DNA from: Paraphysomonas bandaiensis
Taxonomy: Eukaryota; Protista; Chrysophyceae
Assembly (NCBI GenBank): GCA_965644295.1
Contig: CBFFRP010000398.1
Span: 1 to 64,000 of the forward strand
Length of the DNA stretch: 64,000 nt
Reading direction: 5' to 3'
Every line of letters begins with the position of its first letter. The stretch's first letter is position 1. This document shows positions 53,397-58,406 of this stretch, one piece after another. Below the pieces are notes generated by a model, which was not told the DNA's origin, did not search any database, and saw only the letters and a program-made list of their open reading frames with translations. The translations under genes and the position numbers were made by a program.

Positions 53397-54999
53397 TTAG
53401 AGCTCATCCTCACTTTCACTAAGCTGGACCGGAATCAAAGTGCTATTTCCCTCTATTTTGTCGTCCGTCTCCCGCAGCTGCTGCTGCTTTTCAGCTACCT
53501 TCCTATCAGACTTTCCCCTGCTCTTCGCCTTCCGTGAAAACACCTCAGCATCGATGGGCTCTGTCTCTGTGCTGCTCCTGCCTCTTTCTCGCCTGGCTTG
53601 AGCTCTTCTATCCGGCATTCCCTTGTGATCGTAAAAAGACGCCTCGGCCACTGCTATCTTAGAATCTGCGGTCCCATAATAGAGCAGCCATTTGCCACGG
53701 AAGAACACTAGGCCTTCCAAAAAGCAAACATTTCCCACCTGCCCCGTTATCTCAAAATCCTCAGAGGGCTTGAAAAAAGTTTCTTCCGACCTGCAGCAGC
53801 ACCGACTCATCATCAGCGGCAAAAGTCGGAAGAATGGGTCACATTACCTCATCAACACCTTTGAAGGGTCATCCAAAGAAAACAGAACCTGTCCCGCCGA
53901 GTAGGTCCCCGGTGCCAAGTTTGGGTCTGCCTCGCCATTCACGCACCGATAACCTGGCAGAGACTCACATGCAGTATTCTTAGAATTGTATATAAACAAA
54001 ATGCCGTCTGGTCGCACGATTGCAGGCGGACCAGGCTCCACTAGATTCGAATCAAACTTTCCTCGCCTAGGGGAGAGGACAGATAGGGGTTTCTTGGCTG
54101 CGGTTGGAAGGTCCATATGGTCTGGTCGACCCCTATACACAGCGTCTGCATGTTCTGCCATAACAGGCGTCCAGTTGATGAGATCCTGGGATGTAGCGAG
54201 ATGGAGATCATTTTCCCCCCAGTACATCCAAAAGCTTCCGTTCAGTTTGGCTGCCACAAGCCGTCCATCTGGCATGGGGTGCGAAACTATGGAACCCGAT
54301 TTAGTCCAAGCATTCAAGTAAGAGCCCCCAAATGCTTTTCCAAATGCTGGCCCATGCTTTGTCCAGTGGAATAAATCACTACTGGTTGCAACACACAATC
54401 GGGCTGTACCATCATATGAGGTATACGTCATCACGTACCCTCCATCTGGAGATTCCACCACTCTCGGATCCTCACACCCACCATCCCATTCAAATTTGTC
54501 ATTGCGATCCTTCGCGGGGTACAGTACAGGTGATGGGAGGCGATTATTGAAGCTGACTCCATCCTCGCTCCACGCTATACCGATACGTGAAGTACCAGCA
54601 TAGCTACCAAGCTATCGGTTCGTAAGATACACTAATCACACACACATCTCATAACATCACCTTATCCTCTGCCCTATACAGCAAATAAACTTTGTTGTCC
54701 TTCACAACAGCCGCAGGATTAAAGACATCCTTCTCCTCCCATCTGACATTTTTTCTTCTAACAGGACACTTAAAGACAGACGATGCATTCGGACCCAGCA
54801 CAGGGTTCACTGCACCCATCTTTGAGAACTCCATCTGCCATGAGTGATTTGGGGTCTCTGATTGTATCCTGTGAGTCATTTCAGGGGATAGTATGGTGTT
54901 ACCTGTGCTAGATGCATACGTACACACGCATCCGTATATAAATAGAAGAGTAATGACATGAGAGGATTGGAGGGGGGTTGAGAGGACAGATAGGGCCAT
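53397..54999 (-). CDS. Glycoside hydrolase family 130 (beta-mannosidase/mannoside phosphorylase family), 3 exons, signal-like N-terminus
   Basis: WEEKDVFNPAAVV..VYLLYRAED, TSRIGIAWSEDG, GGCEDPRVV, YVMTYTSYDG, WTKSG, FDSNLVEPGPP and VCFLEGLV..WLLYYGTADS. Confidence 0.9.
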
Positions 55000-55620
55000 A
55001 ATAGGGAGGTGATTGAGGGTAAAGTGGTGGGGTAGTGGGTTTATTGTATGAGAGGGTGATATGCCTATATATGCATATATATATACAGCGATGTGCTCAG
55101 TACATACACCGCTGGGACTGTACATACTATGCGGATACAGAGTATACGAGTGATGCGTGTATGCATTGATGTATAGTATATAGATCGATATACAGTACAG
55201 GTGAAATACCAACAGTATTATATATATATACTGTATATACAGAGAATACGACCAGCAGCGTAATACATCAAAGTACAGCAAAATACACAGTTAGAGTACA
55301 GAGTACAGTGTACTCCTGTATCAGATTGGATAATGTACATCCGCACCTGTCCTCCAGTACATCTATCTAAATACACATACGTATCCTTCCCTTTCATACA
55401 TACGCACTTCACCCGCAGTCTCAACTCACCTACTCCAATTAGACGTATGGACATGTCCACATACGCCCATTCACTCCTCAAATTTTCAGCAGTGTGTTAA
55501 TATCCACATACCCAAATATTAAAATATTAAAAAATTCAATCCATGCAAATCTTTCAAGAAATCCACTCAGTTCATCTCTCATTATTTCACCCTCCTCAAG
55601 GATAGAAGAACTCTATTGCA

Positions 55621-57174
55621 ATGAGTACTGAAGCAGCAGGCAGTACAGATCAAGTGGATAAGTACTCCACACCTCCTCAGAAGACTCCTCTCGATATCTT
55701 CTTTACATACTTGAAGTACATCGTATCCTCTGGGCTCACTTTGACTTATGTCGTCTACATCTTATGGGGCATATGGACCAATCAGGCGGTGTTGCCTGGC
55801 CCGCCTATCGCCCACTTCTTGATCTTTTTGTTCTGTATGACTCTTGTGGCGTATCTTGAGGGATTACAAGTGGCTATCTTAGCCGTTGAACACACTGATC
55901 CAGAGAAGTATCGGGAAACTCATCCACGTGCCTACGAGCTCATTACATCAGTCAAGAGGGGTAATAATGTTGAAAAGTTTCTGGTTGGACGTCAGTTCTT
56001 CACAGTATTTGTTATGACTCTCATGGCACAAGTGACCAGTTTCCCTAATATCTCTTCTCTTGGAATCCCACCAGTGATTTGGTTTATCTTCATTCAGACT
56101 GGTCTGCCTGGTGCAATGGTAGTTACCACTATTGGCTCACTTCAGCCCCAGCTGTTGGCTGCCAAGGACCCTTGGAAGTTTATGAATCTGTACGGGTCAT
56201 GCGCGACTCTCTACCTTTGCTATGGTTTGGAGTTCACTGGTATCTGCACACACTTCGCCTGGATGCTCATTACGATCCTACGCAACACCGTCTTCATCAC
56301 GGATCAGAAACCCAAGAAGCACCAGAGGGAAGTCACTCTTCAAAGCCAACTCATTGAGGCTGCTAAGTATGTGGTTTCCACATGCGTTATCCTAACTTAC
56401 ATGACCTACCTCATGTGGGGTATCTGGACTGGCCAGGCTGTGCTCCCTGTTCCTCACATTGCTGTCTTTATTGTCTTCTGCTGTTGTATTCTCTTTCTTG
56501 CTCACCTGGAGGGACTGCAGGTGGCGATATTGGTTGCAGAGGCAAAGGACCCTGAGCCGTATGCTCAGAGTTATCCTCGCGCATACTCGCTCATGAAGAG
56601 AGCCACTTACGAAAAAAATGTCCGCCGATTCTTAATTGGAAGACAGTTTTTTGTCATCTTCGTAGTCTTTCTTATCAATCAGTGTACTATTTTCCCAGAA
56701 ATTTCTAAATTGGGAATCAACAACGGTGTCTGGTTTGTGTTCGTCCAGCTGGGATTCCCAACCGCCCTCAACATCCTCTGTTTTGCTCAGCTTCCCGCTC
56801 AACTGCTCGGTAATCAGGATCCTTGGTTGTTTATGAACCGATATGGTCCCCGCTTCACTTTAGAGGTATGTCTTTTTACCGAGATGACTGGTTTGGCCCA
56901 TTTCAGTTGGGTTGCTACATCTTTCTCCAAGGCTACTTGGTTCCCTATTACTGTCAGCGCAATCTCTGAGATTGAGCAATACAAAGACCTAGAAAGCATT
57001 AAGACACCTAATGCAGCCACAGATGAGGTCACCTCAGCAGCTCCAACTTCAACTGTCCAGGATTACAACAGCGTTCCTGAGGCAGATCTTGCTACCGAGG
57101 AACTCGATATGGAAATGCATTCCAACCTTGGGCGATTTTTAAAGTCATTTAGGCTTCCTACAGCCAGGAACTAA
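55621..57174 (+). CDS. SIT: Silicon transporter (full-length two-repeat SIT, 517 aa, intronless)
   Basis: Two LEGLQVAIL (EGxQ) and two FLxGRQFF (GRQ) motifs in a duplicated hydrophobic multi-TM unit. Confidence 0.95.
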   Translation: MSTEAAGSTDQVDKYSTPPQKTPLDIFFTYLKYIVSSGLTLTYVVYILWGIWTNQAVLPGPPIAHFLIFLFCMTLVAYLEGLQVAILAVEHTDPEKYRETHPRAYELITSVKRGNNVEKFLVGRQFFTVFVMTLMAQVTSFPNISSLGIPPVIWFIFIQTGLPGAMVVTTIGSLQPQLLAAKDPWKFMNLYGSCATLYLCYGLEFTGICTHFAWMLITILRNTVFITDQKPKKHQREVTLQSQLIEAAKYVVSTCVILTYMTYLMWGIWTGQAVLPVPHIAVFIVFCCCILFLAHLEGLQVAILVAEAKDPEPYAQSYPRAYSLMKRATYEKNVRRFLIGRQFFVIFVVFLINQCTIFPEISKLGINNGVWFVFVQLGFPTALNILCFAQLPAQLLGNQDPWLFMNRYGPRFTLEVCLFTEMTGLAHFSWVATSFSKATWFPITVSAISEIEQYKDLESIKTPNAATDEVTSAAPTSTVQDYNSVPEADLATEELDMEMHSNLGRFLKSFRLPTARN

Positions 57175-58406
57175 TGTGGTACACATGAGTACTATTTGTT
57201 GTGCAAGTTTATTACAAATTCACTGGTAATTTGCTTTACGTAGAGCAGAATTCGATGTCATTCCGATATTGTCTGAAGTTTTGTTGATTGCGTGAAATAA
57301 GAATAACAATCTATACATATTCCATAAAGTCATTTCATTCTTTCGATTTTAATAAACCTGACGGATAAAGCACTTGGGACATAATCTGCAATATAACTTT
57401 GTACCAAAAGAGGACTTAGGTCGTTTTAGTTCTTAGGTTTTACCACAAAGTTAAAACGCTACTAAGATGAGCATTTACCGTATCCGTATTGTGCTATATA
57501 TGTAAAATGTATTTTCATGATCAATAATTGCTATTACCATAGCATATATCTCCACCTTAATTGTAAATAAAATTTTAAACACTTTACGTTTTATAAAGTA
57601 ACAATATATACGAAATACCTATCATGTATTAGTTTCCTTCCTAGAAGTGGACGTCGAAGCCGCGAAATCGCATTAGAATTTGACAAAAGAGCGAAAAGAG
57701 TTATTTTAGTGAAAGTATCCAAGAGTTATATATATTAATAAATAATAATAAGTATTAAATATGCTGTCAGTCAAGAATTATTCATCAGAAGCATGTACTG
57801 ATAATGCAATAAAATAACAGGCAATCATGAATCCACTGTTTACTGTTTAAAAGGGGCCCAATTTACTAACGCCAATACAGTTTCTTTTTTTCCTTGCTAT
57901 CATGTGTACATGTGTGAATTGATGACATCCTAGTGTAGTGCATAGTGTACAAGATTTTGTCAGTGGAAATCACTGCTAAAATGATTTCTAATAAACATTT
58001 AGCATCATTTAATTCCTCTGATGAAGTAGAAAGTATTATACATTCATTTATATTATACTATACAATTTCCTTAGCCAGTTCATCAGGAATAATCTGCTGA
58101 ACAGTATACTCAACTTGCCCTTTTCTTTTACCAATAATTAGATGTGTGAAAATATACTGAATGAGAATCATAATGTTTAAATGGGTTGGATACTACTGTT
58201 CTGGGTAGTAAACTGGCAATGCATGTATTTCTAAGCAAGGTAGAGATAATTTTAACGTGCAAGCAGAGCGACCATTGTGCCATGAAAAACTGTCATTATA
58301 TGAATTTATGTATCAATTGTGAGGTAAACGAATGCAAAATAACTAGCTACATCACTTCTAATGGAGGTTCTAAGCATCATTACAGCTAGTCGGAGCAACA
58401 CTAAAA

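Follow-up and report, generated by a model that had tools for sequence, protein, structure and literature searches.

Silicon transporters (SITs) are the textbook example of active silicon import, and their origin from half-size SIT-like proteins (SIT-Ls) is a model case for pseudo-symmetric transporters. Chrysophytes of the Paraphysomonas kind are makers of siliceous scales. The closest described relatives of the gene reported here are the SITs with ten transmembrane domains (TMDs) found in Paraphysomonas, Ochromonas and Dinobryon by Marron et al. 2016 (Mol Biol Evol 33:3226, PMC5100055). When these Group 2 SITs were cut into halves, the N and C halves proved to be mutually closest, and an independent duplication and fusion of SIT-Ls was inferred (PMC5100055, Fig. 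5). Table S2 of that paper includes SIT1 and SIT2 from MMETSP1103 (P. bandaiensis) and from MMETSP0103 (P. imperforata) (PMC5100055). The core result, that the halves of Paraphysomonas SIT1 and of the Ochromonas SITs were fused independently, has thus been known since 2016.

Two other types of protein are relevant for comparison. The Group 1 SITs of diatoms, haptophytes and choanoflagellates, such as those of Cylindrotheca and Thalassiosira, belong to the same family and have the same motif pairs and two-unit plan as the protein described below, but they come from a separate fusion. The diatom SITs work as Na+/Si(OH)4 symporters and depend on conserved glutamines both for binding and for transport (PMC4912633); symport of this kind is presumably common to both groups. 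The SIT-Ls of Coccolithus braarudii, dinoflagellates and pelagophytes are half-size proteins with a single five-helix unit and one motif pair. The C. braarudii protein, CbSITL, is a proven Na+-dependent silicon transporter; it gives dimer-sized bands and seems to dimerise (PMC10098502).

The window analysed here is a stretch of 64,000 nucleotides of P. bandaiensis DNA (contig CBFFRP010000398.1 of assembly GCA_965644295.1). Positions 55621-57174 of its forward strand hold a complete, intronless coding sequence of 517 codons plus a stop, which encodes a Group 2 (SIT1-type) silicon transporter. An in-frame stop lies 21 nt upstream of the ATG, and nothing interrupts the frame. The DNA is from the same genus as the published Group 2 SITs and apparently from the same strain as MMETSP1103, and the 'SIT1' of the 2016 paper (CAMPEP_0185024078) is either this copy or one of its 90% identical paralogues. 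The protein has the common Group 2 architecture of two EGXQ-GRQ pairs and ten predicted helices, its nearest named protein is an Ochromonas silicon transporter (A0A1D8RAF8, 67-69% identity), and its halves are sisters as in Fig. 5 of PMC5100055, so that we see no essential difference from the described members. A public collection contains a 100% identical protein whose 90% cluster includes MMETSP1103 transcripts (taxid 36769, Paraphysomonas), and two MMETSP transcripts, P0122 and P0124, are 99.6% identical to it.

The gene is transcribed. Contigs from four RNA-type runs are colinear with the window at 55566-57311, 55522-57307, 55613-57328 and 55647-57322, have neither gaps nor joints, and end at the gene borders. 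Together they define a transcribed region at 55522-57328 (forward strand), and they fit an unspliced mRNA of about 1.75-1.8 kb that carries both units on one transcript. The gene stretch is present in 20 runs from 10 studies (11 of the runs are recorded as RNA). A marine polyA metatranscriptome and one from a hydrothermal vent are among the four runs that gave the colinear contigs. Since near-identical transcripts occur in such marine and vent samples and the stretch recurs across ten studies, this Paraphysomonas lineage is widespread and its SIT is expressed in the field. Just upstream of the gene, at 54649-55481, there are long microsatellites of the ATGT/ATGC type with alternating purines and pyrimidines. 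Similar microsatellites adjoin several of the SIT paralogues described below (L007:533-1250; L012:3763-4404), and they appear in lists of open reading frames as 'MYVCMYVC' or 'YIYIY' pseudo-ORFs.

The protein belongs to the SIT family by its domain content, as it scores 162.2 bits against the Pfam family Silic_transp (PF03842; gathering cut-off 26.8 bits) over two stretches, and its halves score 88 and 84 bits when taken singly. According to the boundaries given by a hidden Markov model (HMM) of the unit and by an AlphaFold2 model, the N-terminal repeat unit comprises residues 25-234 (55693-56322) and contains five long helices, at residues 23-52, 62-89, 116-138, 151-182 and 193-223. The EGLQ form of the EGXQ motif stands at the end of helix 2 (EGLQ80, 55858-55869) and a GRQ motif at the start of helix 3 (GRQ123, 55987-55995). 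A short linker of residues 235-242 (56323-56346), which is part of a connector rich in lysine and arginine, leads to the C-terminal repeat unit, residues 243-452 (56347-56976), with five long helices of its own and a second pair of motifs, EGLQ297 (56509-56520) and GRQ340 (56638-56646). The remaining residues 453-517 (56977-57171) form an acidic tail that is modelled with low confidence (pLDDT below 50 from residue 463) and is not conserved across the family alignment. The polypeptide therefore has the two EGXQ-GRQ pairs by which Marron et al. 2016 recognise a full SIT, and single transcripts span both pairs. Unlike a SIT-L, it joins two units in one open reading frame and one transcript. No CMLD motif was found anywhere in the 517 residues, and the first-pass annotation was correct in reporting that this diatom motif is missing.

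That annotation had also noticed that the two halves are about 50% identical (roughly 93 identities in 183 positions with one 1-residue gap), a likeness that holds and is far beyond chance. When residues 1-245 were compared with residues 246-517 by BLASTP, 95 of the 194 aligned positions were identical (49%) and 65% scored as positives, with one 1-residue gap and E = 4e-67, and the strings that had been picked out by eye (WGIWT.QAVLP, LEGLQVAIL, PRAY.L, GRQFF and DPW.FMN.YG) all fall within this alignment. However, the high identity is no peculiarity of the gene, as the halves are 40-50% identical in all 62 of the two-unit relatives that are 58-75% identical to the query. In a second chrysophyte-type clade with altered motifs (EALH/EGLM) the range is 29-35%. 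For the statement that diatom SIT halves are more diverged we can speak of one example, the diatom-type protein P0181, in which the halves are 23-33% identical as against 49% in the query. P0181 has the CMLD motif, which the query lacks, scores 829 bits to PF03842 and has a Corethron sequence in its cluster; in a word search with an 18-sequence alignment it was the sole diatom-type protein among the best 120 of 310 matches. Both halves of the query resemble the N half of the diatom proteins, and in the diatom-based Pfam model it is the N half that they match, one at positions 5-200 and the other at 39-198.

P0181 is itself unusual. With 1036 amino acids it is a tandem of two complete SITs, and hence of four units, in a single open reading frame; the identity is 44% between the N units and also 44% between the C units. 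The Corethron member of its cluster is a transcript of Corethron pennatum.

To place the halves, the homologues were split into units with the unit HMM, and trees were built with FastTree (280 units) and with IQ-TREE under LG+C20+F+G4 (83 units). The trees are unrooted, and Group 1 is represented in them by P0181 alone, on long branches. As a bacterial SIT-L outgroup, no relative was found in the genome contigs scanned with P0172 and with the unit alignment. In the IQ-TREE analysis the SIT1-type N halves form a clade (support 100/98), the SIT1-type C halves form another (100/100), and the two clades are sisters (100/98); the free SIT-Ls fall outside, both of the diatom halves lie far off, and the FastTree tree gives the same picture. 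The N and C halves are thus mutually closest in the free tree, as expected of Group 2. Forcing the SIT1 N halves onto the diatom N halves costs 26.8 lnL units and is rejected (p-AU 0.030), which, together with the missing CMLD motif, speaks against placing each half with the corresponding half of Group 1. These results support a fusion in the chrysophyte SIT1 lineage that was independent of the one that gave rise to the diatom transporters.

The fused clade takes in both Ochromonas and Paraphysomonas. Since its N and C halves are reciprocally monophyletic, the fusion is old and clade-wide, a single event that preceded the radiation of the SIT1/Ochromonas-type clade. The first-pass annotation had offered three thoughts on the origin of the repeat, an independent fusion, a more recent one (a 'snapshot' of the step from SIT-L to SIT) or concerted evolution of the halves, and had proposed a tree of the separate halves. 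In that tree the N and C halves of the query group together and not with the corresponding diatom halves, so the first thought is borne out. The second is contradicted by the reciprocal monophyly and by the 62 relatives, all of which have the same range of identity between their halves, and the third fares no better, as discussed below.

We are therefore left with a preferred reading in which we have considerable confidence: the gene is an expressed SIT1-type silicon transporter whose units would go back to a half-size Group 2 SIT-L-like gene, duplicated and fused on a single occasion and independently of Group 1, with the C unit diverging faster afterwards and with silicic acid as the likely substrate for uptake. 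The ancestral gene would have given two homologous units, each with its own EGXQ...GRQ pair, by one duplication and one fusion before the SIT1/Ochromonas-type clade radiated and apart from the fusion behind the diatom, haptophyte and choanoflagellate proteins.

The main rival is that two SIT-L paralogues that were already diverged were joined, or that the N unit split off secondarily to give the nearest free SIT-Ls. The N unit is indeed 54% identical to the SIT-L P0094 and 50% to the SIT-L P0118, but 49% to its own C unit. Furthermore, a clade of the N halves with P0094, P0118 and the third SIT-L P0119 that excludes the C halves is disfavoured (delta lnL 27.3) but not formally rejected (p-AU 0.0975). 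Against this, the free tree joins the N and C clades and leaves the SIT-Ls outside them, as noted above, and the gap in raw identity can be accounted for by the stems of the unit tree, 0.64 for the C unit and 0.25 for the N unit. By these stem lengths, the C unit diverged faster than the N unit after the fusion, and this faster stem explains why the N unit is slightly closer to P0094 than to its own partner. We consider this rival improbable, though it deserves to be kept in mind.

A second rival is gene conversion between the halves, which after an old fusion, possibly one in common with the diatoms, would have kept them alike. It would account for an identity of 49% where the diatom example has 23-33%. 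However, concerted evolution should make the two halves within a protein or lineage cluster together, and what is found instead is an N clade and a C clade, separate and fully supported, whose internal branching patterns broadly match (16 proteins sampled, about 65 in total). The identity between the halves is also uniform, at 40-50%, and the version with a fusion common to the diatoms conflicts with the rejection of N halves joined to diatom N halves (p 0.030). This explanation is very unlikely. Finally, an artefact, with adjacent SIT-L genes or an assembly join read as one open reading frame, has nothing in its favour beyond the repeat structure itself and can hardly be credited, given one uninterrupted frame, RNA contigs from four independent runs that each span both units, some 60 full-length two-unit homologues in other data sets and three more two-unit paralogues in the same genome.

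The fusion of the SIT1 type is not the only one in Group 2, as the same tree shows at least two more. One is in the EALH/EGLM clade together with the C298a- and C149-type genes of the Paraphysomonas genome (99/95), and the other is in a metagenomic clade of P0108, P0185 and P0186 (100/99), where the halves are 47-50% identical. The latter fusion is not obviously covered by the 2016 sampling. Marron et al. 2016 had likewise inferred more than one fusion in Group 2. P0108, P0185 and P0186 have 757-819 amino acids with a long C-terminal extension and form a two-unit clade nested among free SIT-Ls.

The free Group 2 SIT-Ls have about 360-390 amino acids and are 38-54% identical to the units of the query, which differs from them in having a covalent linker of about 8-16 residues between its units and in the asymmetric divergence of these two. 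One of the free Group 2 SIT-Ls clusters with a Durinskia transcript. Another record, P0064 (CAE7570794.1, 'SIT, partial [Symbiodinium microadriaticum]'), is 76-79% identical to chrysophyte SIT1, far closer than any dinoflagellate SIT-L is, and because of this identity it is more likely to be a chrysophyte contamination or transfer than a dinoflagellate gene.

The genome (G000; 62.6 Mb in 669 contigs) has eight SIT-family loci, studied as L001, L002, L007 and L009-L013. Besides the query on contig C398, they are C348:104563-106224, C406, C150, two loci on C298 (C298a and C298b), C149 and C405. Four of the eight are of the SIT1 type and lie on different contigs: the query, C348 and C406, which are about 90% identical, and C150, at 75%. 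Three others are divergent two-unit genes of 481-516 amino acids, including C298b, which has no canonical EGXQ motif and a single GRQ and resembles the published 'SIT2' in this respect. Three paralogues, C406 (P0121), C150 (P0127) and C298a (P0104), are 100% identical to transcripts from MMETSP1103 or other MMETSP data sets. All seven two-unit SIT genes are single uninterrupted open reading frames, the exception among the eight loci being C405 (L013:2971-3981, reverse strand). At the start of its 337-codon frame stands the final helix of one unit (HMM positions 170-204), followed by a complete second unit, which rules C405 out as a free SIT-L. The rest of the first unit could not be detected within 3 kb upstream, and C405 is a two-unit SIT gene whose N unit is missing, separated by an intron or decayed.

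The predicted fold of the protein displays a pattern that is more difficult to reconcile with the literature, in which SITs are 5+5 inverted repeats that arose by 'duplication-inversion-fusion' (PMC5100055, PMC10098502). The full-length AlphaFold2 model, based on an 86-sequence alignment, has a pLDDT of 85.8 and a pTM of 0.82 and contains two sets of five long hydrophobic helices. When the N unit was modelled on its own (pLDDT 89.7), it had just two strong neighbors in the PDB: the transmembrane domain of CorC (7cfg; Z 12.1, rmsd 2.9 A over 150 of 156 residues) and MtCorB (7m1u; Z 11.9, 146 residues); the next match has a Z of 6.4. All of the top six Foldseek matches are CorB or CorC, with a probability of 1.00, and in the ESM Atlas the two SIT clusters that rank first are followed by an unnamed bacterial protein and then by four rows, all of them CNNM clusters. 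The superposition takes in helices 2-5 of the SIT unit and the entire DUF21 domain of the CNNM/CorB/CorC proteins, which are Mg2+ transporters, and the SIT unit differs from them in its extra N-terminal helix, its substrate and its lack of CBS and CorC domains, neither of which was found in the query. A search of the PDB by sequence, with the protein or with the unit profile, returned nothing relevant. The full model also resembles proteins of the major facilitator superfamily with Z of 10-11 but with an rmsd of 4-6 A, which we set aside as a generic match between helical bundles.

At the sequence level, 43 of the 86 family members have sub-threshold matches to the CNNM/DUF21 family PF01595 (best E 3.2e-7), and the query scores 17.9 bits against a gathering cut-off of 28.4, so it falls outside that family. 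The models thus indicate a strong fold resemblance, and we would call the SIT unit 'shaped like' CNNM/DUF21, not a 'member of' it.

This resemblance bears on the topology. In the CorB domain three helices span the membrane, a helix-turn-helix lies in the cytosol and a juxtamembrane helix is re-entrant; the protein is a parallel homodimer (PMC8242095). Although the SIT model has two sets of five long helices, as the 5+5 TMD scheme requires, helix 5/10 superposes on the juxtamembrane helix of CorB/CorC, which does not span the membrane, and the distribution of lysine and arginine argues against a crossing at this point as well. Among the 86 sequences the K+R counts are alike in both halves, with about 5 each in loops 2-3 and 7-8, about 4 in the linker and 0.1-0.3 in loops 1-2, 3-4, 6-7 and 8-9. 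By the positive-inside rule, the motif loops and the linker would therefore be cytosolic, and hence 'TM5/TM10' would not cross and the halves would be parallel. We suggest tentatively, as a possibility somewhat less probable than its opposite, that the SIT unit may consist of an extra N-terminal helix plus a DUF21 fold with both unit ends in the cytosol, and that a full SIT may be a parallel pseudo-dimer like CorB/CorC, with its EGXQ-GRQ pairs facing the cytosol. If this is true, an 'inversion' step would become unnecessary, and this would explain how a tandem duplication and fusion could succeed on at least three or four separate occasions. It would also tie Na+-coupled silicon uptake to Na+-linked Mg2+ transporters and alter both the placement of the substrate-binding motifs and the choice of solved structures that guide mutagenesis. 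Knight and co-workers are said to have modelled SITs and SIT-L dimers with AlphaFold in 2022. A parallel or CNNM-like SIT topology may already be in that study (Knight et al. 2022, BBA Biomembr 1865:184056), and in the literature searched, outside of which it lies, we found no published link between SITs and CNNM, DUF21, CorB or CorC.

As to function, the query is most likely a silicic-acid importer that feeds scale formation. We infer the substrate and the Na+ coupling of Group 2 SITs from the diatom SITs and CbSITL. By this homology, uptake would proceed by Na+-coupled alternating access, and the conserved Gln, Glu and Arg residues in the motifs of both units would line one central site.

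In conclusion, the locus confirms, at the level of the genome and from a much larger set of sequences, the independent chrysophyte full-length SIT that was published in 2016. What it adds to that account (PMC5100055) is an intronless genomic locus, a genome with eight SIT-family loci that include three SIT1 copies of about 90% identity, and trees in which the fusion predates a metagenomic clade much larger than the sampling available at the time. The SIT1 fusion is an old event that has been stably inherited.
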